Of a stretch of DNA of 64,000 bases, positions 23,895 to 62,164 are shown one piece after another. The position numbers and the translations under genes are program-made. The notes beneath the pieces are model-generated. The model had not been told where the DNA came from. It saw nothing but the letters and a program-made list of their open reading frames with translations, and searched no databases. Numbering within the stretch: position 1 is the first letter of the stretch; each line of letters opens with the position of its first letter. The stretch is from Vicugna vicugna (lineage: Eukaryota), in contig MU061603.1 of the NCBI GenBank assembly GCA_013265495.1, positions 312,923 to 376,922 on the forward strand. Direction: 5' to 3'.

Positions 23895-24233
23895 CTAAGC
23901 CTCCTTCCCAGCTGCTCCAGGGGGCAAGTGCTGACCTGGGGGGCAGGGGGTGAACCCCAAGCCCTGCAGAGCCCCCATCCCAGCTCTGACTGAGAGGCTG
24001 GCATCAGGGGGCACTGGGGGGTGGGCCGTGGCCAGTCTGCTCTGGAAGCCACCTCTTCCATAAAGACACATTTTCCGCTCTGAGTTCATGGACCTGGTTT
24101 GGGAGCCGTTTCCGTCGGTCCTGCCTTCCAGGAAGTATGTCAGCATCTCGCCCTCGCCCTTGACGCTGACTTTGCCTCGGCACACGAAGCGGTACGCAGC
24201 CCACCGCAGCAGCCGGTGAGCTTCCTCGGTCAC
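23895..24233 (-). pseudogene. ADCY1: ADCY1 exon 20 coding portion
   Basis: VTEEAHRLLRWAAYRFVCRGKVSVKGEGEMLTYFLEGRTDGNGSQ...PPGAAGKEA* (TAG 23895-23897); cag acceptor at 24234-24235. Confidence 0.92.
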
Positions 24234-25264
24234 CTGCAGCAGAGACATGCGGGCATCACTCTTGGTCAGTGGGGAGCCCACAGAGGGGTCCCTCCTCCAC
24301 CTGCACGGCCCATCCTGATCACCCAGCCCCTGGCCTCCCTAGCCCGGCCTGGGAGCCGGGTCCTCTGCTCTTCCTGTGGTGACTCTGCTCACTCTGTGAG
24401 AAGGACGTGATCCCACAAAGAGAGCAGGGGACTCAGAGGGGCCTAACCGGCCCCAGACAAGCAGGCGAGGATAGTGTTCCCCATGGATGATGGGTTGGCT
24501 GGACAGGGGACAGGGTGTGAGTTCCGTGGTCACCCCAACCTCCAGCCAGATGTGCAGACATCAAGCTCCAGCTGTGGACAGACAGGAGCAGGCCCGGCTC
24601 TCTGCAGGGCTCTCGGCACCTGCAGTAACCTCGGACAGCTTCGAGGGTTGGGGACTGGCAGGAAGGGCCCAGCACCAGGCTCGTATCCCTGTGGCCGGCA
24701 CAGAGCCCTCAGGGTCCAGGTGGGGTGCCCAGGCTCCTGGGGCTTCTGTGGGTCCAAAAGCGGGGCCACCAGCACAGACAGGGCAGTAGGCACATTCCCC
24801 TAGTGACAACGGGACATGACTTAACTCCCTCAATTCTTGGGTTCCCACACAATGTTAGCTAGAATTCCTGCCTCACAAAGTTAAAAAAAAAAGATGATAG
24901 AGGAGAAAGCACTTTCTAATAAGGTTCTTTAAGCAGAAGAGGACACAGTAACTTGGTTCCTCCTCGCCTTACACTGAAGGAGGAGACCACCTCCCTCCTG
25001 ATTCCCCCAGGTGCTGCTCTGAAAACCCCCCCATGTCATCTCTGGGATCTTTAGTTAAAATGACTCAGCCCTTCCAGGGCCCAGGGTCTCAGGTCCCCCG
25101 GGTGTCAGTCCCCGGCAGAGCTGGGCAGAGGACTGCTCTCTCCCCTGCCCGATGGGCTGGAACCTGGCCTTTCTCCCGCGTGGCCCTCGCACTCACTAAC
25201 CATCGGCCTGCTTCTGGCATGCACATTGTCTAATTCCCGCTCTGGACAGTGAGTGCCCCACACA

Positions 25265-25350
25265 AGGGGTCTTGTCTATCTCACCACGTCTTACCAGGGC
25301 TCCGTATTCATAAGTGCTTGTTGAATGAAAGAAGGAAGGAAGGAAGGTAG
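25265..25350 (+). mobile_element. L2 3' end with (GAAG)n
   Basis: cataagtgcttgttgaatgaaagaaggaaggaagg. Confidence 0.5.
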
Positions 25351-28300
25351 GCAGGCGGGCAACCAAGGCCTGAAGAAAACTGTTTATCCAGGGAAGCACA
25401 GAAATCACACATGACCACAGAAAATCAGAACCTGCCCAGCTCCCTCGACAGTGAAATCCGTCGATGGCTCTAAAATCCCCTGGGGAGAAACAAACAAAAC
25501 TGGCTGGTCCAGTGTAGACAGGAAGGGGTGGAACTGCGTCTGCTCGACCTATAGGAGGCGGCCCAGGGCGCTACCAGTGCCCTTAATTAACGACCTCTGC
25601 CAATTTCTGCAGCTGCTCCTCAGCAAGGCCCTGGCTGGTGCTGGCACGGAAGGGTTGGGGGCTGCCTTGCGTCTGCAGAAAGTCCCCTGGGGAGGAACCG
25701 AATGCCGCCATTCACCCACCCAGACAGAAAAGGGGAGGTGGACTCCTGAGGCCTGGACTCTCACCGGATGGGCTCCATCTCTTAGCCTTGGGAGCTGGTC
25801 AGGTGGTCCCTCCCACACCTGGTAAATGAGAAGGATGCTGTCCGCTGACAAGAAGAGTAACTTGGTCAGCCTGACGGTGGCTATCACAGTCACGAAGATT
25901 CAGATGGTCAAGAGAAAGTGGGGAGCGCTTAAACTCCCCAGGGCGCTGGCTGGCGGGTGGCCCCAAAGGCCCCGGTCTAAAGCCACACGACAGTGAGAGC
26001 CTCACTCAGGTCCCCCGCAGGGCTCGCTCAGTGCACCCTAAAGTCCTTCATGGAACTCAGGCAGAAACTCGCTGGTTACCGGGGGAGACACCGAGGTCAC
26101 CAAGGTCACCACTCAGATGTGGCCTCTAAGACTCAAGGTGTAAAAATGGATCGTGATCAAAGGCTCTGTTTTGCTCTTTCCTTTCACAACTGAACCCACA
26201 ATTCATCTGTTCAGAGACCTGTGCTCCGGAGACCCCACCATCCTGCTTGAGCCCCAAGATACACACTGACAAGCCGACAAAACCTCTGAGTCTGATCCTG
26301 ACCCTGAGCTTTTTCTTTCACTGTTTTCACTTGTTTTATGAAGAAAGGTAATAAAGAATCCAAAACATTGTGCAAAGAAATGCTGGAGGTAAGGATGACC
26401 CACTGCCACACACAGTAAAGCCGAGGTCTGACAGCAGGTGGGGACGGGCCAGGGGGTCCTTCCAGGCTGCAAGCTGCCCCTGTACGCCCCTCAGCCTTGA
26501 GAGTCCAGCCAGGAAGTCCCAGGCTGTGAATCAGGACAGCGCGTGCTGTTACCGGGGTGGGTCCTGGCGAGGGCCCAGGTCAGGAGCTCAGAGACACAAG
26601 GGCCTCAAGAGGCCACGAAGGCATCCCCCAGAATGTCCGATTCTTAGCCATCTGCGTGAGGGTCCCTGTGTCGAGGCAGAGTCGAGCTGGGGACGCTCCC
26701 TAGAGTTCCCTGTGAGGCCCGGCCGGCAGGGGAGGACCCACCGTACAGCCATGTCGAGCTCACTCTGCCTGAGAACAAGTGCTGGGCCCCATGGAGGCAT
26801 TTCCGGGGAAGCATCTGCTCGGTCCCCAAGCGGACGGCCGAGGTGGAATCTGGGCATCGTCGTGGTCAGCCTTCCCTTGGCTGCCTTACTCCTTGGAAAA
26901 TGGGGCCCCGAGATGTCCCTGGGACTTCAGCCTGCACAGAATCCTCGCCTGCCTCTCCTGGGAGAGGAGACACAGGTGGGAGGCAGTCTCCTTTTTTGGA
27001 TTTTTGACACAGAAGAAAAACGCTTCCACCAGAGGGCTGAGGAATGAGAATTCCGGCACGCGATGTCTAATTGACATATTTTCAGGAAAAAGTAAGATGC
27101 CTCTTTACAAACCTTTAACATTAAATCCCAGTCTCTCACTCCCTTCTTCAAGGGAAGAAGCAAAGGTTTAACATGGGCCAGCACAGGGAAGGGGCTCTCT
27201 CCTGGACCGTGACCAGGAACCCCTAAAAAGAACCACACAACAGGGGAGCGTAAGTGTTTCTCCCTTAAAACAGCGGGCAGGAGCCCGATGGGCCGAAAGC
27301 GCCCTCAGCAAAGAGGGCAGTCACATGGCCAGGCCGGGGGCAGGGACTGCTGGTCTCACCCAGGCTGACAAATGTCAGCAGAGCCCCGCTCTTGTCCTGC
27401 CCTGTCCCAGGCGCATGGATGCTGACACTCAAGCCAAATGAAGGAAGGCGAGGGGCCTGGTCTGCAAAAATCTTGCTTGATGCAGGCCCTCCCGGGAGGT
27501 CCATGCAGAGGGACCGTGGAGCCAAGACGTAGCACTGCCCTGTGGGAGCCCAGACGCGGACATCGCCAGGCAGCAGCTGGGGGAGGCTGGATGGTGTGAG
27601 GGAGGCCATGTGATGGCAAACAGCCCTCAAAAGAGGCTGAGGGAACAGGGGCGGTTCTGAGAAGAGGAGTGGCCGACTCAATCTGACTCCTGAAACTTAG
27701 AAACTTAACATTGGCTCTGGACGTGGCCAGGCTGGAGAGTGGGTGGGGCTCCCACCAGGTCTCCCCTGGGACATGACCAGCTCTTACAGAAGGCTGCGAG
27801 GAACAGGGGTGGAAGATCCTGTTAGGAAAGGAACACAGTGACCTAGGATTGACAGCCATACGACAATGCGCGTGCCCTTAACACTAGCGAGCTGGGCACT
27901 TAAAACTGCCCAAGATGGTCAATTTTATGTTATGTGTGTTTCACCACCTTAAGGGAAGCTTAAGAAAAAGAACCACAGATGCTGCATGGAGATCCCACCT
28001 ACATTCTGAGCAGCAAGAGAGCACCATAAGGATTTTGATCTGCTGGTCATTCAAGCTGATGGATCCAAGGGACCCATCAAGGTACCTGACCAAGAGTTAG
28101 TGCCCAGCAAATGCCAAGTGGGGCCACCGGAATCGTACAGGCACGAGGTGGGAGAGCCCCAGGCTTGCAACCTTCTCATTGGAACCACATCCTGCAGGGG
28201 GCTGTACCCCAGTGTCTTTGTCAAAACCCGGGTTGAATGCACATCTCACACGGTCTGCAGAGGACCAAGTGCGACTCTGTGATACAGCAAAAAGACCAGC

Positions 28301-28997
28301 GCTAACTGGCTGCAACGTGGTGACAGTCATTGGGCGCACAGTCCTCTGTCGCTGCCCCAAGGCCAGGCCACAGCAGGAAGGCAGCAGCCCTGCTTGTCAA
28401 GTGCTGCACTCTCTGCCCTGTCCCCCGGGGTCCCCAGAGGACAGCCACAGCCACACCCAGGGGACAGGCGCCTTCCCTCTGAGGCTCCCAGAGGCCTGCA
28501 GTGTCCAGCCTTGAGCTGACTCACACTTGCTTGTTCGTTCTAAAGGAAATTCAGAGAGTGCAACCACATTCCCACCTACCCATGAAGAGCAGGGGCCACT
28601 GCCCTCGAAACCTTCAGATGGCTCCCTGCTGGGGTCACAGCACCAGGGTCTCATCCCAGGTCAGGTGGCCCCACAGCCCTCTGCCCTTAGAATGGTGAAG
28701 AAGCCCCTTCCCTTCTAGGAGCGGTCACTCACTGTCCCCAACTGTCCCGGTCACTCACCACCCTGACTCTCCACATGGCCACACGGGGACCAACCCCCAA
28801 CGCCGCAGACACAATGAGCCCCCATCAGCGTACCTTCATGCAGCTTCGTGTCCCCACCCAGAAGAGGCAGACGAGGAAGGGAGGATGCAGGCTGCAGACC
28901 TGGGTGGCTGGCCCGCGCCTTACCCTTGCCTCTCCTGCCTCAGTCTCCCGCCTGCAGGAATGGGCACCTGCGCCTTGGGGGCTCTGAATGCACTGAC

Positions 28998-29122
28998 CTG
29001 GATCCTGCCCTGGACCCCGGTGCTGTCCATCTGACTGGCCACGTTGACTGTGTTTCCCCAAATGTCGTACTGGGGCCTGCAAGCTCCAATCACTCCGGCC
29101 ACCACGGGGCCAACGTTGATGC
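28998..29122 (-). pseudogene. ADCY1: ADCY1 exon 19 (catalytic motif, Arg->Gln)
   Basis: 125 bp, [42 protein letters not shown]; ASQM in place of ASRM (CAG at 29031-29033). Confidence 0.93.
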
Positions 29123-30357
29123 CTGGAAAACAGCCCCGGTGTGGTGTTAGTGGGGAGGTTTTGGAGGGGAGGCCATGGGGTCACTAAGTGCAAACCCCTC
29201 CCTAAAGCAGGGACCCCACAGCATCACTGAGCAGCTGCTCCCAGCCCCTGCTTGCACCCCACACCACCAGGAAGCAGTCCTGATCCCAGAAAAAGTCCCA
29301 TTTCCTGGAACAGCATCCTCAGACCAAGTCCTGCTGCTAAGGCGGCTGACCTTTCAGTCTGTAGAGCCACAGTGTGTGTCCCCCCCACCCCAGCTCCCTC
29401 TTTCAGTAAGGACAGTAGCTCCTGACTGTTTCCCAGGTGGGATCCCTCAGCTTCTCCGGGTGTGGGCCCAGAACAAAGTACTTCAGGATGCTCTGAAGGA
29501 GAGCGGAGGCCCCCTTCCCTTTATGTGATTTGGGGCCCACCCGGCCTGGGGGGTGACACAGGCCCGTGTGCCCCAGCTGTGTCTGGGCCGACACCAGGTC
29601 GTATCTTCTGATTCTGTCCTCGGGCATCGATCTTTCTGAGCTCAGCCAAGCTGTCAATAACGTTTCAGACACTGGCCTAGTCGATCCCCCAAAGCCTGGG
29701 CAGGCAGTGCTGGCATCCGCAGGAGAAGGTGGGGGAAGCGAGCAGAACTGGACGGTGTGAGCTGGGGGCACTCAGCCACGGGCCAGGTGGATGTGGGACC
29801 TCGAGGAAGAGCCCCAAAGGGCCCACTTCCCAGATGGCTGGTGGGACGCAGAGAGCCACCCTCTACCAACCCGGATGCCCCAGTCCACGTGAACGAGACG
29901 GAGCCAGGATCCAGTCTCGTGTGACTAGCCATCCAGGCACAGAGGGCACTGGCTGGTGGGTTCTCAGTAGGAGAGTAAACAATAGAATTTCCCTGATGGA
30001 CACTTGGATCTGTTCCCTGTCGCACCAGTACATCTATTAATCCGAGCTCGCAGCCCGGAAGAACTGACCGCTGGGGGTGAGGCGCAGAGGGCGCCCTGCC
30101 CCCACCTCCAGCCCGTCCCTCAGGCCAGGCACCAGGTCTAAGTTAGCGCTTGTGCTTAAGCGCATCAGAACTCCACCCACCCTGATGGACACCTGCTGCC
30201 CCCCTCACACTCAAACCCAGCGCTCAGTCCTGCTCTTAAGGCCACTAGACGTGTGAATTGTAAAACAGCCAGAAGTGTCCAGTTTAACTAACTGTATCGT
30301 GACTAGCAGGAAAGAGAGAGAGAGAGACAAAGGAGAAAAAGAAACCATAAATCTGCA

Positions 30358-30485
30358 GGGAGGAGGGCATATCTTAGTGGTAGGGTCCGTGCTTAGCACG
30401 AAAGAGGTCCTGGGTTCAATCCCCAGCATCCCATTAAAAAAGTAAATAAATAAGCCTAATTAACTCCCCCACTGAAAAATAAATT
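30358..30485 (+). mobile_element. tRNA-derived SINE (camelid vic-1-like)
   Basis: gggaggagggcatatcttagtggtag...gaggtcctgggttcaatccccagc...aaataagcctaattaactcccc. Confidence 0.88.
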
Positions 30486-31104
30486 GAAAAATCTAAAATA
30501 GTTAAGACAAAGATTTTTTTTAAAAAATCATAAATCTCTAGTTTAACTATATCCTTGACTAGCAAGAATTTTTGTGGGAAACTATCTTCTTCCCAGAAAA
30601 AAGCTGAATTTAAGAGTGAAAAAACCTATAGATTTATAAAAGCTAGAAAGGAACTTAGAGCTCTGATGGTCCCCCTCCTCACGCACAGGTGAGGGATGGG
30701 ACCCCAGGAGGACAAAGGACCCGCCTTGAGTCTGCACAGCTGGGCTCTGCACAGCTGCGGCCCCAGTGTTCCGGGCCTGCTGACAGGGAAATGGGGCATC
30801 TTCCTCCAGCTAAGTGTGGACTCAGAGGTGTATCTGAAAGCCTCTGAGATAATCTACATTTCTCATGTGTTTTGTGAGCTGGACAATAACTCTTCCAGGT
30901 CCTAAGTCACTGATACCCAGCTCTGAGGCACACCCAGCTGTCCCTGAGTCCCACTCACTCATCTGGGTGGCTCCACCCTCCTTCCTGAGACAAGGGAGCC
31001 TGGACCAATGACCTCCTAGGGGGAGGGCCGCGGCCACCAGCTCCTGGGGTGGACACGGGAAGGGTGTGCTGGCCCCCGGGATGGGACGGCCTGCAGCCAC
31101 GTAC

Positions 31105-31219
31105 CGACACGGAGCACAAAGTCGTTGTAAGACTGGTAGTTGATCTCATCCAGGACGTCGAACATCTCGATGGCAAAATCTGCCAACGTGCTGAGGTGGG
31201 AGGAGATGCACTTCTTCGC
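31105..31219 (-). pseudogene. ADCY1: ADCY1 exon 18
   Basis: 115 bp, AKKCISSHLSTLADFAIEMFDVLDEINYQSYNDFVLRV; cag/gtacgt. Confidence 0.93.
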
Positions 31220-31389
31220 CTGGATGTGAGCAGACACGGGTTATTACGTTCAAGGGGTGCAAGGGCAGAGGCAGCAGGGACACTCAGCCAGGGATCTGTC
31301 GGGGAGGGGTGCAGCCTGTACCCCTGATGAGCTCAGGGATTTGATCCCCACATCAGCAGTGCAGCAGCCGGGCTGCTTGAGTTAAATCT

Positions 31390-34300
31390 ACAGGTCAAGT
31401 TGGGAATCACTGACGTCTTAACGATGTCTTTCTACGCAGAAACATTGAATATCTTTCTGCTTATTTAGACCTTTGATTTCTTCATCCGAGTTTTACAGCT
31501 TTCCTCATAGACATACTACATTATCTTTAAAAGTTTGTACCTAATATTTTATTTTGAGGGAGGGAGTGCTAATGTAAACGGTATTGTATTTTTAAATTCC
31601 ACTTGTTCATTGCTGGTATATAAGAAAGTAATCGACTTTTGTTTATTAACTTTGCATTTTGCAACCTTGCTGTAATTGCTTATTGCAGATATTTTGTTGA
31701 TTCTTTTTTATTTTCTACATAAACATTCATGCTATCTAGGAACAAAGAGAGTTTCATTCCTTCCTTCCTTCCGTCTATGTACCTTTATTTCCTTTTCTTG
31801 TGTTACTGCACTAGTTAAGACTTCCAGCATGAATGTCAAATAGGAGTGGTGAGAGGGGCTTGCTTGCCATGCTCCTTACCTCATGGGGGAGGCATTTCTC
31901 ATCATTATGCATGTGGTTAAGCTACAGGTTTTTTTTGATAGGTGTTTTTTTATCAAGTTGAGGAAGTTTCCTTCTATATGTAGTTTGATGAGAAATTTTT
32001 CTTTAAATCAGGAAGGAGTGTTCTAGGCTGTCAAATAATTCTTCTGCATCCATTAATGTGATTTCTCTTCTTTATCCTGTTGATAAGGTGAATTTTATTA
32101 ATTAATTTTGACATGTTGAGCCAGCCTTGCCTATCTGGAATAAATTCAACAACTCGTTTGTGGTGTATAGTTCTTTTCGAACCTTGCTGGATTCAACTGG
32201 CTAATATTTGTTGAGAATTTATGCATTTGTGTTCAAAAGAAATACTGGCCCATAATTTTCCTTTTTGTAATTTCTTTATCTGGTTCAATATCATGGTAAT
32301 GCTGGACTCACAGAATGAGTTAGAAAGAATTTCTTCTACTTCTATATCCTGGAAGAGATTGTAGGGAACTGGGATGATTTCTTCCTTAAATGTTTCACAG
32401 AATCCACCAGGAAACCCATCTATGCCCAGCACCTTCTGTTTTGGAAAGTTATTAATTATTGATTCAATGTATTTAATAGACATATCCCCACCCAGATTAT
32501 CAGTTTCTTCTCAGCTGAGTTTTGGGAGATTGTGTCTTTCAAAAAACTGGTCCATTTCTCCTCATTTATCAAACTTGTGGGCATATAGTTGTACTTTTAA
32601 ATACTAATTGGAAATAGTAACTTTTAAAATGTTTGATTTTCTAATTGTCTACAGCTAATATACAGAGATAAAACAGAAATTCATATGTTAATTTTATATT
32701 CGGTAAACTCACTTAAAAATTTTAGCAGTTTATATATAAATATTTTAGTTAAGAATAATGGCTCCATTCCTACTTTTGCAATTCACAAATCTTCTATTTA
32801 TTGTCCTTCCCTTATTGGACTACTAGTTAGGACCTCCAGTGTAGCATCACAGAGCTGTTCACAATATACGTTAATATCTTTTTAATATCCATTGGTTCAG
32901 TGGAAATGGCCCCTCTTTCATTTCTAATATTTGTGTCTTCTCCCTTTTTTGTTGATTGGCATGGCTAGAGATCATCAATTTTATGGATCTTCTCAAAGAG
33001 CCAAATTTTGGTTTTGTCGAATCTCTTGTTTTCTTGTCTTTAATTTCATTGATTTGTGCTCTGACTTTTATTATTTATTTTCTTCTTCTTGCTTGAGGTT
33101 AGATCATTCTTCTTTCTCTACTTTTCTAAGGTGGAAGGTGGAAATTTAAACTATTGATTTGGGATTGGTTTTCTTTTCTAATATACAAATTGAATCATAC
33201 AAATTTCTCTCTAAATACTGCCTTTTCTGCATCCCACAAATTTTCATAAGTTTTATCTTCAATTTCATTTATTTCAAATTATTTTTCAACTTGAGATTTC
33301 TTCTTTGTCCCATGTGTCATTTAGAAGTGTATGGCTCCATCTCCAAATATTTTGGAATTTTCCAATTATCTCCTAGAAATAAGATTTCTACTTTAACTCC
33401 ATTCTGGTGTGAGAATATAGTTTACATGATTACAATTCTTTTAAATTTGTTAAACTGAGTTTTATGGCCCAGAGTGTGGTCTATCTTGGTAAATGTTTCA
33501 TGTGAGCCTTAAAAGTAGTGTATTCTGAGGTTGTTGAATGAAGTAGTCGATAGATGTCAATTACACCCAGGTGATTGATGACACTGTTCAATTCAGCTAC
33601 CTCTACAGATTTCCACCCGACTGGATCTACCAATCACTGATAGTGTGGCACTAAATTCTTCAACTGTAATAGTGGATTCATCTATTTCTCCATGCGGATC
33701 TATCAGTTTTGGCCCCCTGTTGTTAAGTGTATAAATATTGAAGATTGTTGAGTCTTCTTGGAGAATTGACTTGTTTTTCATTATGCAATGACCCTCTTCA
33801 TCCCTGATCATTTTCCTTGATCTGAAGCTTGCTTTGTCTGAAATTAAGATAGCTACTTGAGTTTTTAATAGTGCTGGCATTGTATTTATTTCTACATCCT
33901 TTTGTTTTTTACATTCTGTTATTTTTTTTCAGTTTTATTAGGTAGAATTATTACAATTGACTGCACATACACATTATATTGCATGTGAATACATATATAC
34001 AGTATACTGCACTTTTTTTTAGTTTACATATATGTACTAATTATTGTTTCTAAGAACGGATTAGATCTTTAGCCTTTTAAACTTTCATAGTTATCAAAGG
34101 AAAAAAGCCAACTACAAAATAAGAATCAACAGAATGTGGTAATCCAATCATAAAGGACAGTCAGATGTGCTTACACATATTCCAGACATCAAAATAATAA
34201 TTAGTTCATTTGAGTCCTTATTATTAGTTATTTTTTTTTAGATTCCTCATATAAATGATGTCATATGGCGTTTTTCTTTCTTTCCAGCCCACTTCACTTA

Positions 34301-34680
34301 GAATGACAATCTTCAGGTCCATCCATATTGCTGCAAATGGCATTATTTTATTCTTTTTCATGGCTGAGTAGTGTTCCATTGTATATATGTTCCACCACAT
34401 CCTCTTTATCAAGTCATCTGGTGATGGACATCTGGGTTGTTTACATCCTTTTATTTTTAATGTGTATGTGTCTTTATATTTAAAGTGTGTTTCTTGCAGA
34501 AAATCTAGTTGGGTCTTGCTTTTTAGCCACTTGATCAGTTTCTGTTCTTTAATTGGTGTATTTAGACCATTCACATTTAAGGTGATTATTGATACAATTA
34601 GATTAGTATCTACTGTATGTACAACTGCTTTCTAGCCATCGCACTTTTATTTTTTTTTTTTTTACATCTTCCTTTCTTTT
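31390..34680 (-). mobile_element. Old L1 (L1M-type) ORF2/3' fragments interrupted by a younger insert at 33904-34441
   Basis: Degenerate ORF2 peptides in the ORF track (KQKVLGIDGFPGGFCETFKEEIIP; QVAILISDKASFRSRKMIRDEEGHCIM; MNGLNTPIKEQKLIKWLK). Confidence 0.88.
33904..34441 (-). mobile_element. 5'-truncated L1-headed retro-insert with 11-bp TSD
   Basis: tacatcctttt at 33893-33903 and 34442-34452; L1 ORF2 end (KQPRCPS...WMDL...ILSEV) at ~34230-34441; minus-strand AATAAA at 33934-33939 followed by an A-rich tail. Confidence 0.75.
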
Positions 34681-35036
34681 TCTGTCTCTTTTATAGGAGC
34701 AACCTGAGGACTTTATTCACAATCCTGCATCAGAAAAGGGGAACATTCAGTGGTGCCAGGCTGCCACGGTGGTGGTGGTGGGGTGCCAGTGGGGAGGGAG
34801 CAGGGCTGGAGGAAGTCCCTAGGATGGGCCTTCCCTCTGTTGACTTTCCACAGGAGGTCGTGTCTAGAGAGAGCTGGTCACTGACAAGACAGCCTGCAGG
34901 CTGCTGCCCTAGTCCAATGCAAAGGGCAAACCAAAGCCCACAGTGGGGACTCTGTCCATGGTCCCTGGGCAGTTTGGGGCAGAGCTGGAACCCAGTCTCT
35001 GAGCAGGGCACACCTGGACAGCGGGCAGGCACTCAC

Positions 35037-35135
35037 CTTGGTCCCAGCTGTGGGCGCCAGCCCCACAGCAGCCATGTAGGTACTCCCAATGGTCTTGATC
35101 TTCTCCAGGTCCTTGTAAAAGTCTTTGTCCATGAG
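35037..35135 (-). pseudogene. ADCY1: ADCY1 exon 17
   Basis: 99 bp, LMDKDFYKDLEKIKTIGSTYMAAVGLAPTAGTK; aag/gtgagt. Confidence 0.93.
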
Positions 35136-35749
35136 CTTTGTTTGAAACACAAAACTGTTAAATGTTACATAACATTTTAGACAAGTCACGGCAGTGTACA
35201 GCCACCAGGAGTAACTGTGGAGCGGATGGGCACGTGCTGGAAAGCAACGTGTCTTCTTCATGTGGCTCTGAGATAAGTTCTGGGGCTGAACTGAAAAACT
35301 AAGGAACTCGGGCCTCAGGGGCACCTACAAAGGCATTTGAAAGAGGAGCCAGGGGAAGCATACAGAACACACTGTCTTTCAGGAGCTGAGGTCACAACCA
35401 CCCAGGAGGACGACGGGCCCCCAGCGAGGGAAGATCTGGCACAGACATGGGACCCAAGGTGGAGGATGCAGAGATGCCCACCCGTCCATCCTGTAAGTGA
35501 GGCCACCCACCTGAGCCCAGCATTTACAAGGTAGGGTACAGGTGCCAGCACCCCACCTCCTAGCCCAGAATCCATCCTCCCCAACCTAAGGCAAAGCCCC
35601 TTCCTCAACGGTCAAAGTCCGTTGGGATTCCCAAGGAGACAAAGTGTATGTGCATCTGCAGAGAACATGCTACACTTCAGAACTGTTGGGGGCTGGGTAC
35701 CCAGGCGCCCTCAGGCCCCAGGGGGTCGGGGCACTGGGGCGGCCCTTAC

Positions 35750-35896
35750 CTCATCGAAGTCGGTGATGATCTCGTTCAGGAGGCGCAGACACTCTACCCC
35801 CATGTTGTTGCCATCCAGCTCGATGTAGAAGTCGTTGAAGTTGGGGATGGAGGCGAACATGACCCCCACCTACGAGTACGACTGGTAGTACAGGTC
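35750..35896 (-). pseudogene. ADCY1: ADCY1 exon 16 (start of C2a) with premature TAG
   Basis: 147 bp, [48 protein letters not shown]; TAG at 35870-35872 (CAG->TAG). Confidence 0.93.
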
Positions 35897-36842
35897 CTGG
35901 GGGTCAAAGGTCGGGTCAGCCACCAGTGCCGAGACTGTGACCAGAACAGCTTTCAGCGCTGGTGCTGGGGACAGGCCCCACCAGGAACCCCTGCCTGGGC
36001 TGCCAGGATGTGCTGGGACCCCACACCGCACAAGGACGGGGCTTGGAGCATCCAGGACACCGCGAGGTCGTTCAGCTCACAGGTGGGAGCAGAGCCCCCT
36101 GAGAGGAGGGGAGGAGGCACCAGGGAGGGACACACTGTTCTGGGAAAACAAACCGCTCTGGACAGCCCCAGGCCCAGCAGGATGAGAGATGAGCCCGGGA
36201 GCTATTTCAGGCCAAAGATGGTCAAGCTGAGTCTTGGTGTTTGTGCCTTTAGGACCTAAAAAGCCAACCTGAGCCCCTTTATTTTTGAGTCAGATTTTCC
36301 AAGCCCTGTGCTGTGCTGCTGGGGTGGTTTTAGAGCTGCACCTCTAGGTCATGGCCCCTAACTGCGCTGAACATGGAGGAGGGAATGAACCACCGGCCCT
36401 GCAGCCAGATGGGCAGGGCCAGGCCATCCACACAAACTGAGCCAGGAGGGGGCGCCACCCAGAACATAAAGGCCTTGAAACAGCGCTTTCCCCCTTGAGT
36501 GTGGATTCCTGAAGCCCGATCTCCCGCCTTGTGGGGATGGTGAATGCTACTCTCTCTTTCAGGATCAAAGGGGAGGGCACACCAGTTCTGGTCATCTGTC
36601 AATCCCACGTCCCAGGGGCCTCCTGATGGCCCAGCCTCTGCCCTGCCCTTGGGGGTGGGCAGGGGGCCTCCCATCCTTGGTGCAGCTGAGGGCTTGGAAA
36701 TGGCCACCCTCTGCGACTTTAGGCTGGAGGAGGGTCCCTCTGGGTCAAACCTGCAGCCCCCACCAGACCAGCTCGGCTGGGAGGAGCACCCTGCTGGGTC
36801 TCAGTGCCCGGGAAGCAGCTGCCACGCAGGCCGCATGCTCAC

Positions 36843-36959
36843 CATGTTCCGGGGGTTGGACATAAGGAAGTGCTGGGCAACGTGGGCCGGCAGGAGGTTG
36901 AAGAGGACCCTCTTGTCGTCCAGCTTCACCCTCTCCATGTCGTCCTGCTCCTCCTCCGC
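36843..36959 (-). pseudogene. ADCY1: ADCY1 exon 15
   Basis: 117 bp, AEEEQDDMERVKLDDKRVLFNLLPAHVAQHFLMSNPRNM; cag/gtgagc. Confidence 0.93.
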
Positions 36960-37104
36960 CTGGGGAGGGCGGGATCCTCCATTAGTCACTCGCCTGCTCA
37001 TCCATGTTTCCTTCACTCGCTCAACAACCCGCCACCTGACAAGAGTCTCTCCTGGACCAGACTCTGAACCCTCTTCCCAACTGGGCCCTGACTTTGGGGC
37101 ATCC

Positions 37105-37450
37105 CTGTTCACTTCCACATTGTCCAGCTTTAGCAAGAACCCTGCTGAGCCAGCTCAACCAGACACCTCATCCCTGACATCAGATCACCCCACACATCTG
37201 ATTGGGTTCCTCATCTCCTTCCCTTCTCAGGTGATGTCTGATCACCTTGGCCTGTCCTCAGCATGAATCTTGTTAGATCAGCTTAGAAACCCCTCACCTC
37301 TGATTTCTCCTCTTAGCAACTTTACATCCACTGCCCCAACTCTGCCCCTTGACTACACACGCCCACCTGCCCTTGCTGTATTAGGGTGGAGCCTCGTCTC
37401 TCTCCCCCACCGCAAGACCCCCCCTGCAGTGGTCCTTACACCTACCACCA
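37105..37450 (+). mobile_element. MER39/MER21-like LTR remnant in ADCY1 intron 14
   Basis: ctttagcaagaaccctgct...tgatcaccttggcctgtcctcagcatgaatcttgttag...gcaagaccccccctgcagtggtcc. Confidence 0.6.
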
Positions 37451-37549
37451 CCCACAGGGCTGCTGGCATCTAGCCAGAAGCCCCTACATGACACCCCTCC
37501 CAAGGGACTCCCTTGCCGACCCCCAAGGAAGCAGAGGGGCTCCTCTTGC

Positions 37550-37676
37550 CTGCGCGGCCCAGAGGTAGTCCAGCCGCAGCTTGACATCCACCTGCCGGGC
37601 GTGCAGGGCCAGCGCACTGGAGAACAGCAGGATGGCCATGATCGGCTCGAAGCTGCGCCCGGAGATGCTGCCGCCC
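37550..37676 (-). pseudogene. ADCY1: ADCY1 exon 14
   Basis: 127 bp, GGSISGRSFEPIMAILLFSSALALHARQVDVKLRLDYLWAAQ; donor is GC (CAG|gcaaga). Confidence 0.9.
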
Positions 37677-37943
37677 CTTGTGAAAGAGAAGGAGGAAAAC
37701 GCACATCAGTGCCAAGAACATAGGACCCGTCCACAGAGGGCCCCTCAGACGTGCCCCCCCCCCCAGGGCTGAGAGCCACATCTCATGGGGAAACCCAATG
37801 ACTTGCTGGAACTGGCACCCAAGTGAAGTAAGGGAGAAACCCAGGCAGTAACGAGCTTCTAGTCAGCAAACTGGAACACGGGGCATCACAGGCGGGTATT
37901 TGAGATGCCCGCCCATGGGCTCTGGCAGGAGCAGCGTACCTAC

Positions 37944-38189
37944 CCCACGGCCTTTGTGTACCCGCTGAGCTCCAGGACCAGGATGTAGCGCGCCGAGCAG
38001 GATCACTTTGAGCAAGGAGGAGACACGCAGGAACACGGCCAGCAGGAGAGCGTCCACGAGGCCTCACAGCAGGGCGTGGGGCGCAGACTCGCAGGGCAGG
38101 GCAGGCAGCACTGGGGCCCGGCCCCCAGATGACAGGATCACCAGGGACCCGTTGGGGCTGGAGCTCCAGGCCCAGGGCAGGCAGCCCAC
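37944..38189 (-). pseudogene. ADCY1: ADCY1 exon 13 with TGA and frameshifting deletion
   Basis: VGCLPWAWSSSPNGSLVILSSGG...PHALL*GLV (TGA 38064-38066). After KVILL the ~LTTS codons are missing and YILVLELSGYTKAV resumes out of frame at ~37987. Length 246 bp is 0 mod 3 although the flanking exons require 2 mod 3. Confidence 0.9.
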
Positions 38190-38674
38190 CTGGAGGGGGA
38201 TGGAGGGCCCAGGAGTGTGGAGAGGGCCCCACTCAGGGCACACAGCACCCCCTCCTCCCCCGCTCTCTCCAGCCTCCGGCTCCGACCCACTCCCCAAGTG
38301 CCATCAGCCGGGCCTCAGACACTCCCACCCAGTTCCGGCCCTTAGAGGCTCCTCACTACCAGAAGGGGAGCCCCAGGAACTGGGCTGGGGGGCACGAGAC
38401 CCCTACCATCCTTCTAAACCACTCAGCTCCATCCTGTTCTCCCCACCACCCTCTCCTTCCTATTTCTCTGCCCAGCTTCTGTCCTTGGCACACTACGAAG
38501 GGCCAATCACGTTTCCTCCACTGGGTGACGTCCCCCTCGCCCTGGCTTCCTGGGGCACCCCAGGCCCATCTCTGACCCCCTTGTTTCCCTCCCCATCCTA
38601 GGNNNNNNNNNNNNNNAGGTGCCCCTCTGCACCTCACGGCTCTCTCCACGCCCAGCCCCCGCAGACAGGCTCAC

Positions 38675-38764
38675 CACACATCCTTGGGCCACAGAGTAGA
38701 TTAAGATGACTATGAAGATACACAAGATGGTGCAGATCTGGATCGTCAGGCATCCTGGAAAACA
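38675..38764 (-). pseudogene. ADCY1: ADCY1 exon 12
   Basis: 90 bp, CFPGCLTIQICTILCIFIVILIYSVAQGCV; poly-T cag/gtgagc. Confidence 0.92.
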
Positions 38765-39369
38765 CTGAAAAAAAAATACTATTGAAAACACAACCTGTTT
38801 TACAAAGTCGTTTGTGGCCACAGCAGATAATTCACAGTACAGAACGTCCAGAACCATCTGAACGCGGCGAGATCCTCACCCATAATTCATCTTCCACACA
38901 CGTTTCCTGGCTGATTTCATATAATTAATCTCCCAGGTGAAAAAGTTGCCAAAATTAAAAAACTGAAAGGTGACATATTTAAATTGAAAAGAGCAACACT
39001 TCCCACCATCTGCTCTACCCTGTGACACTGACTGGCACTGAAATTCACCGAATAGATTAACTTGACATTTTTATAATACTGCATCCTTCTATCTCAGAGA
39101 TGGTAAGAATTTCCCTTTATTTGTTTCTTCTCTTACATGCTTTAAGTTTTATCATTTTCTTCACACAGGCTTTATACAATTTTTGTTAAGTTATTAGAAA
39201 TTTTATTTTAAGCCTATTTAAACACATTTTTATAATATTTGACAAATGATTTCAAGGATAGTCAGAAGATCTTAGAATCACACTTCTGAAACTAGAAATG
39301 AAAACAAAAAAAGAGACCATGGGACGCTGCAGAAAGCACGGACCAGCGAGGGTGCCCTGGGCCGGGCGT

Positions 39370-39500
39370 GTGGTTACCCCTCTAACCCTCCCACCCCGTG
39401 AAGTCGGGTTCATTACGATCCCTGCTCTACAGGTGAGGAACCGGGGCCTGGACACCACCAGCCAACCTCACTCGCTCTACAGACCAGGACACAGAGCAGG
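39370..39500 (-). mobile_element. MIR
   Basis: ctacaggtgaggaaccgggg resembles the reverse MIR core. Confidence 0.5.
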
Positions 39501-40757
39501 TTGCTCAGCTCACGTGGAGCTGAGACAGATTCACGCACAGACCAAACAATAGCACGAGAACTAATTTGTCGTCACAGCAAAAAAAGACAGCTGATCCGAC
39601 ATGAACAATGGAAAATGCCCCTAGAATGGGACCCACGATTAGTCAAAGGCAGCCCAGTGGGGTGTTAGCTGTTGGACCATCCTCAAAGCTCGCTGTCACT
39701 GTCTCAGAAAGTGACTGTGTAGCAATGGCCAGGCTGGGCGTCCCGGACCCCACGGCCAGAGGCAGTTCACAGCCAGAGCTGAATTTCAGAAAGGGCCCCA
39801 ACAGCGGGATGAGGCCACAAAGCAGGAGGATGCAGGGCAAATGTGGAGCGAGACCCTGTGCTCTGCAGGGAGAGAAGCCGTGGAGCGTGCCGTGACCAGG
39901 ACACGACACAGGAGCACTGCAGCTGCACCAAATGGTCGTGGGAGGCAGGGTGGCCGCTGAGTGATGACCCCACCGTGCCTCAGCCCTGTGGCTGCGGAGT
40001 TTAAACAGTCTAGGCAAAGGGGATAACTACACAACCACATCCTTCTCCACTCAGCCGGCCATGCTCCTGGCTTATTCTCAGGGCTCCTGCCGTGCGTTAG
40101 GGGCCAGGAGAAGGTGTGGCCCAGCTCCCTGGACCACGTACTCCCACTGCGGGGGGAGCGGGGCATTCAAAGGCTTCCAACCAGGCGACAAACTAAGAAC
40201 CATATTGTAAATCACAGTCGCACAGACTACACACAACTCAAAGAGTTCCAGGAAACGCTGATGACAATCAATAGACCGACATTTTCATTCATTCTTGTTC
40301 TGTTTCTTTTGTTTACAACTCACACACACACACACAAAAGATTTCACAGCCCCCAGTGAGTCGCAATCTGAAGTTTAAAAAATACTGACAATCTATGCTA
40401 AATAAACGAACTCAGTCCCACACAGATACACTGCAGGAGCCACTGGGGCTGTGGCAGAAAATGATGTAACATGAGGACCAGGACTGGGCATTTGCAGGGG
40501 CTGGCAGGAGCTCCTGGGTTTGTCTCTGGGGTCCCTGCCCTCTGCTTGGGCTCCCTCTCTCTTCCCAAAGAGGGAAAACCTAGAGGTTTTCTAACTTTCT
40601 ACTCACTGTCCATTCATCAACCATGTCTAATTTATCTCACCAGAGTTGCAAACCTCCTCCTTGCCTTCCCCACCCACCGCAGGACTCTCAGGGTCTAGGG
40701 TGGGCTGGGCTGGGGGCGCTCTTCCTCCCTGGAGACCAGCCCTGCCAGGGCAGCAGG

Positions 40758-41294
40758 TGTAATAGAAAAGAACAAATTTGACTTCATATTAGATCTGTTT
40801 CTTTCGCTTTAACCCTGTACCCTGTTTTCTAGGCTCAGTCTTGCCAGCTCTGCACCTTTTGTAAAACAATGTTGCCTTTAGCCTGAAATAGACAGGAGAG
40901 CCTATTCTCTGAGCTCTGACCTTTAAAGATATTAACACTTTTGTACTTATATAGAGATGACAAGTTGCAGAATAGAAAATAACATTTGTTTTGTTAGAGG
41001 TTTTACAGGGACACCATGACCTGACCCACGTGGACAGCTGCAAGCACAAAGAATTCCAAGAACAGAATTCCTGCACCAAGAAGTCTGCAACAACCAACCA
41101 CAGCCCCTCTCCTTTTTAGTATAAAAGGAGCCTGTAATGTGACTTAGAGAAGATGGTTCTCCAGGACATTAGTTTGCCATCTTCTCAAGTCAGCCGGTTT
41201 TCTGAATACAGTCACTACTTCTTGCCCCAACACCTGGTCTCCTGATTTACTGGCCTATCATGTGGCAAGCAGAATGAGGTTGATCTTGGTAACA
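40758..41294 (+). mobile_element. Solo LTR (ERV1/MER41-like), copy 1
   Basis: TGTAATAG...GGTAACA termini, TATA-like tataaaagg, near-TSD cagg/caga; clearly homologous to 55697-56127. Confidence 0.8.
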
Positions 41295-43399
41295 CAGAGA
41301 GGGGAGGAAGCCCAAGTGAGGACTCTCATCTCCTGAGGGAGCCCCTCTGCCTGTGCTCAGAAGACCACAAAGGGGTGACTAGGACAGTGGATGGAAAAAA
41401 GAGGCTGAAATATGACCATCAGCACCATGCCTGGGTGAGAAAGATGAGGGGGGTTGCTGTCTAAGGCACAACGGCCTCCTTCCAAGTCACATCACCCTCG
41501 TGACCCCAGGAAGCAGAGAGGCCTGGAGCCCCAGAGAGCAAAGTGCACCTGAAACTGCAGGTGCCCAGTGACTGGTCCAGTGTGCACCCCTCTGGCACCC
41601 GCCTCACTGCTCCTCCTCCCCCCGCCCCACCTGCTCAGCCTTGGTCCCACCACATCCCCAACCAGGGCCAGCACCACTGCAGGAATGCCCTCGGCAGGCT
41701 GCGCAGCCTCAGCTGCGTCCGCACGCCTGGTCAGTCCAGCTCTGCCCCTTTCCAGCCCTCACCGTGACTCTCCAGCCACCTGCTCTCCTGCTCTCCCGCT
41801 CTCCACCCTGAGCCCTGTAGAGCGCCTCCTCTGGTCACGGCATCCTGGCCTCCAGGACGGACAGGGATCCCGCCCCTTTGCTTCACCGGCTTCTCCTCTT
41901 GTTCTAAGAATGTTCAGTTGCGCCTATGGCATCCCAGGCCCTGCTCCCAGGACTTTGCGAATATCAGCTCCAATTCCCATCCCTTTCACAGACAAAGACA
42001 CGAAGGCCATAGAGCTGGCAGCCCCTAGTGACGAGGGAGCCAGTGGGGTGGGTGAAGGGCCCAGGTGGTCCCAGAGCTGCCACACCAGCCCTGATGCCCT
42101 GGCTGTGGCCACTTCTATGTCACGGGGGAAAGCCCTCTGCTGGCTCCCAGACCTTCTTGGGGATGTGTGGCTGCAATGGGTCCCAACTCAGCCGCGTGCA
42201 CAGCTGTGCCCACTGGCATCATCTCCCTTCCTCGGTACGTGCTGGGCCTCTGCTGGACAGTTCTGTCCCACCTGCCGGCCCCCATCCTCCCCAGCTGGAT
42301 CCTGCTGACCATGCCCCCCTGTCTCCTGGCCCCAGTCTTCTGCACAAGCCCCGTGGTGAACTCAGAGCCCTGCTGTCACGTCCAGGGCCTCAGGAGGGGA
42401 GAGTGTCAGCACGAGGGTCGCCCCTGAACAGACACACGCCGGCTGGGTGAACTGAAGCCGCCTGCCGTCAGGACCGTGCGCTCTGCCCGAGCTGCTTCCT
42501 GACCCGCAGCCGGGAGGGGGACCTGCTGCCGCGCTGGGTCAAAATCATACTTAGAAAAAAATGCTCAGGCCAAGGAGGGAGGGCGAGGAGGGGTGAGCGG
42601 ACATTCAGAAAGAAAGGGGCTGGCGGAGCCTGGGCCCCCTCCACCAGGAGAGCTGTTTGTCCACCAGGCACACAGGTCCCCAACAATGGGGACGAGTGTG
42701 ACAGGACTTAGAAACCAGCATCTATTTGCAATGCTTTCACTTGAAATTAGGTGAATAAAGCCATCTTATGTGAAGTGGGAAGTTTCACTTGACCCAATCA
42801 GATGCCACTCCGTCTATGAAATCAAAGAGCTAGGATTGTGGTTATTTATTCAAATAGCATTTTTTGTTTTGTCTCAACCTAAATCAAGAAGGTACGCATG
42901 AATAATAAAGAATTTAAATAAATACACCTAGATTCAATCTTCTCACAAAGCAGTTGTTTTCAACAATTGTACAAAGATAACCCAGGGTCTCTCAAACATG
43001 ACAGCTGGGGGTCTAGGGGGGAAATGGGACTTTTGAAAAAGAAGGTTCAGAACAGAGCCCTCTCCTGGGAGCCTCGGGCGGCACGGGGCCACAAGCTCAA
43101 CCCTGGCTCCAAAGTCAAAGAATCTTCGAGAGTGTGGAGCCCCCAGTCTAGGACACGATCACATGACAGGGCACAGGACCCTCCTTTGGAGGGAACAGTG
43201 TCACCCCTTGTGTTCATTTATTCAGTCACCATCCACACCCACCCCTTGCGCCTACGGGGCACGCTCCCAGAACTCCAAACAGCACCCACACAGGATGGGG
43301 CCCAGTGAGTTTCTCCCACATGGATAAGGCTTTTCACCTGCCAGAAGGTGAGGGACAAACTGCCTCCACCTGTCCTGCCACGAGGGCATGCAGAGGCCG

Positions 43400-43575
43400 T
43401 GCACTTACCTGTGCAGGTGATAGGTACAAGACACACACACGTGCATCTGGACCAGGTAACGTGCAGGTGCATCTCACACACACGCGTGTACCTGGATCAG
43501 GTGAAGAGCAGGTACAGGACACACCATGCACGTACCTGGACCCGGGTGATGTGCAGGTACAGGACACAGGACACC
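43400..43575. repeat. Degenerate ~44-bp minisatellite derived from the ADCY1 exon 11 3' end
   Basis: About 4 units of gtacctggac..ggtga..tgcaggtacaggacac starting near 43400, 43441, 43486 and 43530. Confidence 0.75.
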
Positions 43576-43620
43576 AGGAAGCAGATGCAAAACACCAGCA
43601 GGAGCAGGACGGCCACACTC
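43536..43620 (-). pseudogene. ADCY1: ADCY1 exon 11
   Basis: 85 bp, SVAVLLLLVFCICFLVSCVLYLHITRVQ; tag/gtacgt. Confidence 0.92.
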
Positions 43621-44437
43621 CTAGGACAGATGACACACAGTCCCTGCAGGCTGGGCCAGGTGACGTGTGCCCAGAGGATGCCTGGGACCGCGCCCTTCCT
43701 CCCCTGCCCCACCCGGGTCCCAGCCCCGGGGAAGCAGCAGTGGTCTCTGGGGAGCTGCCCGTGATGGTCCTTTTCTAGCAGAGGAGCCCTTCCTGTGTCC
43801 CCCCTAAGTTCCCTGCCACCCCAGGGTCCCTCTAGCCCTGGGAGTGCCTGAGAGGCGCTCTCCTCATGCGGGAAGGACGAGGGCTGCACAGACTTGGCTG
43901 CTGGGCACTGCCCTCTTCCTGGGCCTCATCTGGAAAGGGTTTTTCTAGAAAAAGTTGGATCCCCAGGCAGGGCCATGCAGACGGCCACTGCGTGTCCACA
44001 GTGTCTGGGGCTGGGGGTGGCTTCCATGTGTTTTCTGGAAACTCACAGGGGAATCACTCCACTTGGGAGGTTTATTAACAAAGCCGTAGGTCTGCAAGAA
44101 AAGTGGAGATTTTCTGGGGTCTTTCTTGCCTCAAACCCAAAACTGCCAAACTCACTTTGATTCATAATGATTAAATGTTATTAAAATTATTATATCTGTG
44201 TTCCTTTCCAGAACCTACTTTTTCTCATTTTAATGTTTCTGAAAATTTGTTGACAAGCACCTGGAAATCAGGGTGCCTGTTTGGTCTGTTTCCTCTCGCA
44301 GAAACTGTCATGAAGCCAGTGGTGCACGTGCTGTGGACAGAGAGGACTTAGAATTGAGTAAATTTAAAATTAAAAACTGAGAACCAGCAGCCCCGCACAC
44401 CAGCCAGCAGGCTCGCACAGCCAGTTCCTCCAGGAAA

Positions 44438-44525: not shown

Positions 44526-44630
44526 AGAGGCGGGGGCACCATGGGACTGTGACTGCGGGAGTCAAACCTGAACTTGAAAAGCAAAGGACTCTTGGTGACC
44601 TCTGACGGATGGACCCAGAACAACACTTAC

Positions 44631-44728
44631 TGCAGGATTATCAGCAGGTAGACAAGGCCGAATAAGGCGGCCAGAATGAGGGCCAGAATGACGGCGCTGG
44701 TAAAATACTCGTCCTGAAGCTGGTGGTA
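44631..44728 (-). pseudogene. ADCY1: ADCY1 exon 10 (first helix of second TM cluster)
   Basis: 98 bp, YHQLQDEYFTSAVILALILAALFGLVYLLIIL; tag/gtaagt. Confidence 0.92.
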
Positions 44729-44907: not shown

Positions 44908-45102
44908 CTTCCTCTCTCACTCAGCCTGCTTGTACTTCAGGGTGAAGAAGTTCAGGTCCGCCATCTCCAGCTCCATCTGCCGGGCTTCCAGGAGGCGGCC
45001 GATGTACCTGTTGACGCGTGTCCCGGGGGTGGCGTGGACCACGTTTGTAGAGAAAGAGGAGCGGTTTCTGAGCTTTTCCGAGGCTGTTCTCAGTGCCCTC
45101 CT
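44908..45102 (-). pseudogene. ADCY1: ADCY1 exon 9 with premature TGA
   Basis: 195 bp, RRALRTASEKLRNRSSFSTNVVHATPGTRVNRYIGRLLEARQMELEMADLNFFTLKYKQAE*ERK; TGA at 44917-44919 (probably CGA->TGA). Confidence 0.93.
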
Positions 45103-51199: not shown

Positions 51200-51265
51200 G
51201 TCAGGGTAGAGCTCAGCGGGAGAGTGCGTGCTTACCAGCAGGCACCAGGTCCCGGGTTTAAGGCC
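51200..51265 (+). mobile_element. SINE 5' fragment
   Basis: agggtagagctcagcgggagagtgcgtgctt...ggtcccgggtttaa resembles the head of the same family. Confidence 0.55.
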
Positions 51266-56127: not shown

Positions 56128-56203
56128 CAACGCCAAGAGGATATGTGGAAAATGCGGTCCCAACTGGTGTCTGCCGTGTCCCTGCACACTGGGGCTGACC
56201 TAC

Positions 56204-56359
56204 CTTGTCATCGTCCTCACAGGTCATGACATTGGAGGAAGGGATCTCCGCCTTGAACATCTTCCGGCAGTGCATGAGCTGCACCAGCAGGCAGCACACG
56301 GTCTTGAACTTCATCCTTTTGGCCAGTTTTATGTCCGAGAGAATCAGCCCTGGAAATAC
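56204..56359 (-). pseudogene. ADCY1: ADCY1 exon 8 (C1b)
   Basis: 156 bp, VFPGLILSDIKLAKRMKFKTVCCLLVQLMHCRKMFKAEIPSSNVMTCEDDDK; cag/gtaggt. Confidence 0.93.
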
Positions 56360-57681: not shown

Positions 57682-57823
57682 CTTTCGCCTATGTGAGGGC
57701 ACGATAAAAAAAGTCTCGATATTATGAGTTTTCAGAAAACTGTTCCTCTCGTGTTCATGGCCCGGCTCCACCTCACAGTCACCATTCAGGCACGCCAGGG
57801 TGGTCTTTGTGATGTGAACCTTC
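57682..57823 (-). pseudogene. ADCY1: ADCY1 exon 7
   Basis: 142 bp, [47 protein letters not shown]; tag/gtaggt. Confidence 0.93.
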
Positions 57824-60800: not shown

Positions 60801-62003
60801 AGTGGGGGGCTGGCAGGAGGAGGGGTGGCAGGGAGGGGTCAGTGGCTGCGAGAGTCCCCCCACAAGGGGACGCTCAGAGGCAGCCCGGGATACAGACAAA
60901 AATGGTGTGGTTTTTGAGCCCATTTAGAAATGCTGTGGCCACTCCCATGGCTGGCTCAGCCGTGGTATTCAAGATGATTCTGAGCTCCCACCTCCCTTTT
61001 TCTGCTGTTGGATTCTAACTTCCATGCTTGCGACTACTGTGGTTCCAGTAAGCCTTCCTTTCATGTGGTTAGCAGCCGCTGTCCAGAGCGAGCACCGCTG
61101 GATCCTGGCTGTCCCCAGCCGAGCTCAGGGCCTCGGCACAGGGAAAGGGCTGTGTGTTTCAACCACCTCCTCTGAGGTCAGGCCGGGAGGGAGAGGGAAG
61201 GATGTGCCCAGAGGACACCAGGCCTGCAGGGTGAGAACAGGCCGTGTGGGGAGAGGGCAGGCAGCGAAGGTCAGAGGCCAGAGCAGAGGGTGCAGAGCTT
61301 TGCCCTGACGTTCACAGGACGTGTGCAGAAGCAGACGTGGGTGTGCGGGTGTCTAACGCTCAACTCCAGCACCTGGGAGCCACTGCTGGTCTCTGCAGTA
61401 GATGTGAGCACATCCTGTGATCTCCTCTAAGGGGAGGAAATCAGGATGGCGGGACCTCGAGCGTGAGCCTCAGAGCCCCCTTTCCTGCAGCCACATCAAT
61501 GTCCTTCGGCCCCCAGCTAGGGGAGGAAGGGGAGCTTCTGTAGTTTTTTGTTTTGTTTTGTTTTTCATACAGTATACTATGCCTCGGCTTTGTGAAAGGT
61601 TTGAAGAAAATGAGCCCAGAGAAGGCAAATGTAGTTAGAATGCATCAGAAGTGCACAGACCATTGAGAACTCATCCCCATTCTAGGAGGAAACCTGTAAC
61701 TTCCCCAGAGGGGCTCTGAAGCCACAGCACGTTCCCCTCTGAGTCTGAGAAAGAAGCCAAGTGTGACGAGGCCGTCAGCACTCCAGACAGCTCTGAGCCC
61801 GGCACATCGCCCCCGCCTCCAGTCTCCTCCTCCAGGGCCCTCTCGCCTGCTTTCTGTGGGGTTCATGGGGTCAGGTGCCTGAACCAGCCCAGAGAAAGTC
61901 TCTTCCATGTTGGTGGGGGGCCAAGATGGCCAGGCTTCCCAGATCCCCACACAGAAGGTCGGATTAGAATCCCCCACACCTGCCCTCAGGGTCCCAGACT
62001 CAC

Positions 62004-62164
62004 CTAGGCAGGCCGGCGGCTTCCATGACGTTGGCCAGGGTGTCACATCGTTGGACCACGTATCGTACTGCCACTTGCGCAGGCCCAGGACCCCGCAGAG
62101 GACCCTGCCGGTGTGCAGCCCCACACGCATGTTCAGGTCCACCTCAGTGGCCTCGGCCATGGAC
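62004..62164 (-). pseudogene. ADCY1: ADCY1 exon 6 (C1a), frameshifted
   Basis: [41 protein letters not shown], then 2 extra bases (GTGACACCCTGGCC vs expected GTGACCCTGGCC) before [11 protein letters not shown] resumes in another frame. 161 bp vs 159 expected; cag acceptor, gtgag donor. Confidence 0.93.

Follow-up and report, generated by a model that had tools for sequence, protein, structure and literature searches.

A decaying ADCY1 pseudogene in the vicugna: loss of the only copy, or of a duplicate

Results

An ADCY1 copy with intact exon structure

ADCY1, the gene for adenylate cyclase type 1 (AC1), the Ca2+/calmodulin-stimulated neuronal cyclase, is the sole gene within the window, that is, the whole 64-kb stretch of vicugna DNA that was analysed. 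Exons 6-20 (15 exons) occupy the minus strand from 62164 to 23895 (Table 1), exons 1-5 being outside the window. When wallaby ADCY1 (P0180) was compared with the window by tblastn, its residues 381-1129 ran unbroken across 15 minus-strand exons, and ADCY1 proteins were likewise reached by phmmer with the ORF of the last exon as query; exon borders were set by eye and by motif. The encoded sequence is closest to ADCY1, not to other cyclase isoforms, and its isoform-specific C-terminal tail ends in ...GKEA, as in all ADCY1 proteins that were compared. Exon-intron structure and 3'UTR are conserved, as in an ADCY1 orthologue, with blocks of the 3'UTR matching those of the bank vole in order to at least 7 kb beyond the stop codon. 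Splice acceptors are AG in 14 of 14 introns and donors are GT in 13, the remaining donor, that of exon 14, being GC. Runs of N are present at 38603-38616 in intron 12 and at 47317-47498 and 47515-47669 in intron 8; all are intronic, exons 6-20 are complete and none of the lesions described below adjoins a gap. In the human genome, ADCY1 is preceded by RAMP3 upstream and followed by IGFBP1/3 downstream.

Table 1. Features of the ADCY1 copy, its disabling lesions and the stretch shared with the alpaca array (window coordinates).
Feature	Position	Strand	Comment
Exon 6 (C1 catalytic domain)	62004..62164	-	161 nt, normally 159
Exon 7	57682..57823	-	tblastn with wallaby ADCY1
Exon 8, encodes the IKPAKRMKFKTVCYLL... 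stretch	56204..56359	-	tblastn with wallaby ADCY1
Exon 9	44908..45102	-	tblastn with wallaby ADCY1
Exon 10	44631..44728	-	borders by eye/motif
Exon 11	43536..43620	-	borders by eye/motif
Exon 12	38675..38764	-	borders by eye/motif
Exon 13	37944..38189	-	246 nt, normally 257
Exon 14, donor GC	37550..37676	-	muntjac donor also GC
Exon 15	36843..36959	-	borders by eye/motif
Exon 16 (C2 catalytic domain)	35750..35896	-	borders by eye/motif
Exon 17	35037..35135	-	protein unchanged
Exon 18	31105..31219	-	protein unchanged
Exon 19	28998..29122	-	CAG at 29031-29033 in place of the NVASRMD arginine
Exon 20, with normal stop codon	23895..24233	-	KGKGEM to KGEGEM at 24153-24155
3'UTR	16795..23894	-	conserved blocks colinear with bank vole ADCY1 3'UTR
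Lesion 1, exon 6: AC duplicated, 2-nt insertion, +2 frameshift	62040-62043	-	muntjac GTG--ACC, window GTGACACC
Lesion 2, exon 9: TGA stop	44917-44919	-	muntjac CGA; CpG transition
Lesion 3, exon 13: TGA stop	38064-38066	-	muntjac TGC; C>A in a CpG
Lesion 4, exon 13: 11-nt deletion, frameshift	junction 37988/37989	-	11 nt present in muntjac and vole
Lesion 5, exon 16: TAG stop	35870-35872	-	muntjac CAG
Stretch homologous to an array unit	23751..44047	-	unit lacks 32482-36029

Five independent lesions and relaxed protein evolution

In the assembled sequence this copy carries five independent lesions, each of which ends or shifts the reading frame, the intact state at all five sites being given by the functional muntjac gene (L011) and, at the end of exon 13, also by the bank vole (L009). 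The sequence-only reading had described an ADCY1 copy that keeps its introns and bears at least five independent null lesions, and comparison with these relatives recovered every lesion it listed: (i) the +2 frameshift of exon 6, where an extra AC is present relative to muntjac; (ii) the stops in exons 9, 13 and 16, where TGA, TGA and TAG replace CGA, TGC and CAG; and (iii) the frameshifting deletion of exon 13, where 11 nt found in muntjac and vole are missing. Its description of exon sizes and nearly all splice sites as preserved is equally accurate, every acceptor being AG and the single GC donor ancestral, and exons 17 and 18, which it had called almost unchanged, show no change relative to the artiodactyl consensus. 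Introns are retained, as in a duplicated unprocessed pseudogene, and the disabling mutations affect a gene whose counterparts in relatives are functional, as in a unitary pseudogene. Judged by its sequence, the locus is a genuine ADCY1 pseudogene, and a transcript from it would at most encode a protein truncated inside the first catalytic domain. An exact look-up of 20 window ORFs spanning exons or lesions returned no match in the protein collection.

The GC donor of exon 14 was considered as a sixth lesion and rejected: GC is also present in the muntjac and in an alpaca array of ADCY1-like units (see below), and intron 14 is thus an ordinary GC-AG intron. This intron (donor at 37548-37549) is GC-AG in the camelid, the array and the muntjac (L011, about 71370), and GT-AG in the bank vole. 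Also considered was a cryptic donor, CT/GTGAGG, at the exon-13 TGA, from which splicing to exon 14 would be in frame; it offers no rescue, because four other lesions remain and the alpaca array lacks its GT.

Decay is also apparent at the protein level. We compared the copy with 12 mammalian ADCY1 proteins, counting an amino-acid change as unique where the rest of the artiodactyl set (five members) is uniform, and found 46 unique changes in the window copy as opposed to 9 in warthog, 9 in hippo and 8 in dolphin. At sites invariant in the 12 mammals, unique changes numbered 26 in the window copy versus 1-5 in the others. One of the replacements, arginine to glutamine in the NVASRMD motif of exon 19, strikes the residue that aligns with the catalytic arginine of the solved cyclase C2 domains of types 2, 5 and 8, presumably Arg1029 by the usual type 2 numbering. 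Four others (I>V, P>L, Y>C and F>S) fall within the exon-8 IKPAKRMKFKTVCYLL... stretch, which is invariant in the 12 mammals and which we take to be the calmodulin-binding region. In exon 20, 12 nonsynonymous and 2 synonymous changes were assigned to the window branch, and nucleotide identity to muntjac ranges from 86 to 96% per exon.

Might the gene be functional, and the lesions errors of sequencing or assembly? The draft assembly has gaps, and the lesions are read from the assembled sequence, but errors would have to account for five lesions (base substitutions in three cases), along with the 26 replacements at mammal-invariant sites, all concentrated in 2.2 kb of exons, next to introns without an excess of window-unique differences and in the presence of an exon 20 dominated by nonsynonymous changes (12:2). 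We consider this explanation very improbable. In a three-way intron alignment of window, alpaca array and dromedary, 98 of 3817 sites were unique to the window (0.026), roughly half of what separates it from the dromedary in clean sequence (4.3-4.6%), and the quality of the assembly looks normal. The fraction of 31-mers from 34900-38600 that was found in DNA runs of three related organisms was 0.64-0.75. Words from the last exon and the 3'UTR (21500-24300) were present at 0.13-0.25 in RNA runs (likely RNA) of two other organisms and at 0.63-0.77 in two small runs of one related organism; the locus seems to be transcribed in relatives.

A dromedary orthologue and an alpaca tandem array

A dromedary protein of 117 amino acids, annotated as 'Adenylate cyclase type 1' (P0293), maps to CM016663.2 at 110.66 Mb (L010). 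Exon 20 and its flanks are 95.7% identical to the window there, with no gaps, whereas the remainder of the 9.4-kb dromedary contig shows 8-14% mismatches and 7-10% gap columns relative to the window and is read as an uncorrected long-read gap fill. A third old paralogue, as the overall identity of 81-85% could have suggested, was rejected when steps of 150 columns showed raw-read-quality sequence beside a clean orthologous 1.1 kb. The dromedary locus is the orthologue of the window copy, at species-level divergence, and is readable in exon 20 only. Its exon 20 has kept KGKGEM and has acquired 4 nonsynonymous changes and 1 synonymous change of its own, a weak hint that camel ADCY1 may also be relaxed. 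ORFs in the dromedary flanks had no Pfam match.

The dromedary gene is annotated only as this 117-residue fragment, and its 3' end sits on the 9.4-kb contig between runs of N, inverted relative to the neighbouring contig. The latter contains a 1.9-kb piece of the 3'UTR (95.4% identity) and lacks an equivalent of window 11699-20850. This arrangement reflects either a misassembly or a real rearrangement.

The alpaca proteins annotated as 'adenylate cyclase type 1-like' (P0007, P0276-P0278) derive from a tandem array in assembly GCA_048564905.1 (L001-L006, L012). The array has a period of 20.96 kb; an unplaced contig of 139.7 kb carries at least six of its units, and two further blocks are on chromosome CM108745.1, at about 0.97-1.0 Mb and at 1.45-1.48 Mb. 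A unit comprises exons 11-15 and 18-20 with their introns and is devoid of exons 1-10, 16 and 17. The sequence-only reading had assumed ADCY1 to be generally single-copy; as a strict statement this is wrong for camelids, since the alpaca has many old partial copies in this array. The array is an old and much more decayed partial copy that is not orthologous to the window copy.

The two blocks on CM108745.1 are 0.5 Mb apart and near the start of this 29.5-Mb chromosome. Array units are 99.9% alike, with one inverted junction among those of the unplaced contig, and the annotated protein models run across unit borders, splicing exon 20 to exon 11 of the following unit. The window segment absent from the unit, 32482-36029, comprises an AT-rich repeat block as well as exons 16 and 17; either the array lost it or the array arose from a copy that lacked it.

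Late loss of constraint

The three-way intron alignment yielded 98 window-unique, 331 array-unique and 373 dromedary-unique sites, the last number being inflated by sequence errors, and derived tail residues are common to window and dromedary and absent from the array. These patterns give the tree ((window, dromedary), array). Over the 397 codons shared with the array, and with muntjac as outgroup, 21 nonsynonymous and 12 synonymous changes fall on the window branch (dN 0.024, dS 0.039), 95 and 32 on the array branch (omega 1.04). In the conserved exons 11, 12, 14, 15, 18 and 19 the ratio of nonsynonymous to synonymous changes is 3:6 for the window versus 62:10 for the array; with the vole as outgroup, the corresponding ratios are 7:9 and 53:11. 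The signature of relaxed selection is confined to the recent part of the window branch, as in a unitary pseudogene. These codon counts show that purifying selection still acted on the window lineage once the array had split off, and did so to a depth close to that of the camel-llama split, and that the array was neutral from its start, evolving about three times faster than the window.

The excess of unique replacements, 37 over 749 codons, translates into about 0.022 neutral substitutions per site, and the catalytic exons alone give about 0.014-0.018; the comparison value accumulated since the camel-llama split is 0.026 substitutions per site. Published dates place the separation of camel and llama at 16-25 My ago. 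Set against these values, constraint was lost roughly 10-20 My ago, with an uncertainty that covers the camel-llama split itself. That the decay is fairly recent, as had been proposed from the sequence, agrees with a neutral period of only about 0.014-0.022 substitutions per site.

A stop codon shared with the array

Every unit of the alpaca array has the same exon-13 TGA as the window (about 8800 in L001), derived from TGC in a CpG context. The neighbouring 11-nt deletion is not common to the array, which has kept part of the deleted stretch and carries a different deletion instead. The TGA is thus shared by window and array although their lineages are 15-20% diverged and the window was constrained after the split. 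Homoplasy at the CpG, an old exchange of sequence or inheritance could each explain it. Recent gene conversion between window and array was rejected as a source, as 50-nt windows revealed no tract of raised identity and the shared changes are unclustered.

Under inheritance, ADCY1 would have died before the array arose, the exon-13 TGA would be the founding lesion passed on to both window and array, and camelids would have been without AC1 for far longer. The identical TGC>TGA in the window and all array units fits this scenario, as do the changes of dromedary exon 20 (4 nonsynonymous, 1 synonymous) and the pooled value over all exons, at which the omega of the window (0.61) is not significantly below that of the array. 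However, a TGA inherited from a common dead ancestor conflicts with the later constraint on exons downstream of it, where the conserved exons give 3:6 against 62:10 (estimated p of about 0.01 against neutrality), and the lesions and replacements are too few for so long a neutral period. Moreover, homoplasy does occur, as shown in exon 19 by a CGC>TGC change that arose in parallel in window and array and is absent from the dromedary sequence, which is of low quality; a parallel mutation is possible for the TGA as well. We regard death of the gene before the array arose as unlikely.

Discussion

The window contains a decaying ADCY1 pseudogene, and the chances seem to us evenly balanced that it occupies the native ADCY1 locus and that the only copy of the gene was lost. 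According to this reading, the native ADCY1 would have remained under purifying selection past the old array split and would then have accumulated 0.014-0.022 neutral substitutions per site; with no intact full-length ADCY1 elsewhere, as we infer, AC1 would have been lost in the llama lineage, possibly in all camelids. ADCY8, the other calmodulin-stimulated cyclase, would remain. In the Bactrian camel, ADCY8 is annotated and polymorphic (PMC11277051).

The existence of a dromedary orthologue, the retention of the long 3'UTR and constraint until about the camel-llama split all fit a native locus, and the same three features also fit a duplication about 10-20 My ago. Counting against loss of the only copy are the following: (i) the 3' region of ADCY1 is demonstrably prone to duplication in camelids; (ii) the gene is a highly conserved neuronal one, with a low prior probability of loss. 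The copy could instead be a duplicated unprocessed pseudogene: a duplication some 10-20 My ago would have taken in 46 kb or more, with at least exons 6-20 and the 3'UTR, and the new copy would have decayed beside an ADCY1 that is still intact at another locus. Camelids have already duplicated the 3' part of the gene, as at least six units on the unplaced contig and two blocks on CM108745.1 attest, the short estimated neutral period is that expected of a copy decaying from birth, and all other mammals in the comparison show strong conservation of ADCY1. Conversely, the whole 3'UTR is kept and a dromedary orthologue exists, although a Lamini-specific duplicate would match the dromedary equally well. 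The 120 best profile matches, furthermore, include ADCY1 clusters for six other artiodactyl lineages (warthog, hippo, dolphin, sheep, musk deer and deer) and no intact camelid one, which is weak evidence, as camelid ADCY1 proteins could sit inside the large 90% clusters of this search (such as Ovis, with 100 members). On balance a duplicate is a serious contender, and somewhat less probable than loss of the only copy.

A loss of this kind might extend further, such that camelids as a whole are without functional type 1 adenylate cyclase. The native ADCY1 would then have died around or before the camel-llama split, and the shared exon-13 TGA would be its founding lesion or the product of exchange between the gene and its dead copies; we consider this broader version doubtful. 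A full-text literature search retrieved no report of a camelid ADCY1 pseudogene, loss or duplication.

In neurons, AC1 links the entry of calcium to cAMP. Mice depend on it for sensory-map patterning, for pain sensitisation and for certain forms of synaptic plasticity; in human it has been linked to hearing. If the loss is real, a lineage without AC1 would constitute a natural knockout, showing how far ADCY8 and other cyclases can compensate, and a conserved neuronal gene would join the list of camelid gene losses. For annotation, two points hold even should an intact copy exist: the several alpaca 'ADCY1-like' protein models represent pieces of a dead tandem array, and ADCY1 can wrongly be credited with reads that stem from pseudogene or array copies.

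Akin to functional mammalian ADCY1 genes (muntjac L011, warthog P0385, sheep P0383), the window copy has the same sizes and phases of exons 6-20, a GC-AG intron 14 and the same type of C-terminal tail. It differs from them by two frameshifts, three premature stops and five times more unique amino-acid changes, and by replacement of the NVASRMD arginine and the KGKGEM lysine. With the alpaca array it has in common the source gene, the GC donor and the exon-13 TGA, yet the array is only 79-85% identical to the window, has been neutral throughout (omega 1.04) and has a branch about 3 times longer than that of the window. Natural loss of function of Adcy1 is known from the barrelless mouse, and a nonsense mutation in human ADCY1 occurs with deafness. 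In both species, loss of AC1 is compatible with life, as it would be here; these are, however, variants within a species, whereas a camelid loss would be fixed in a lineage.
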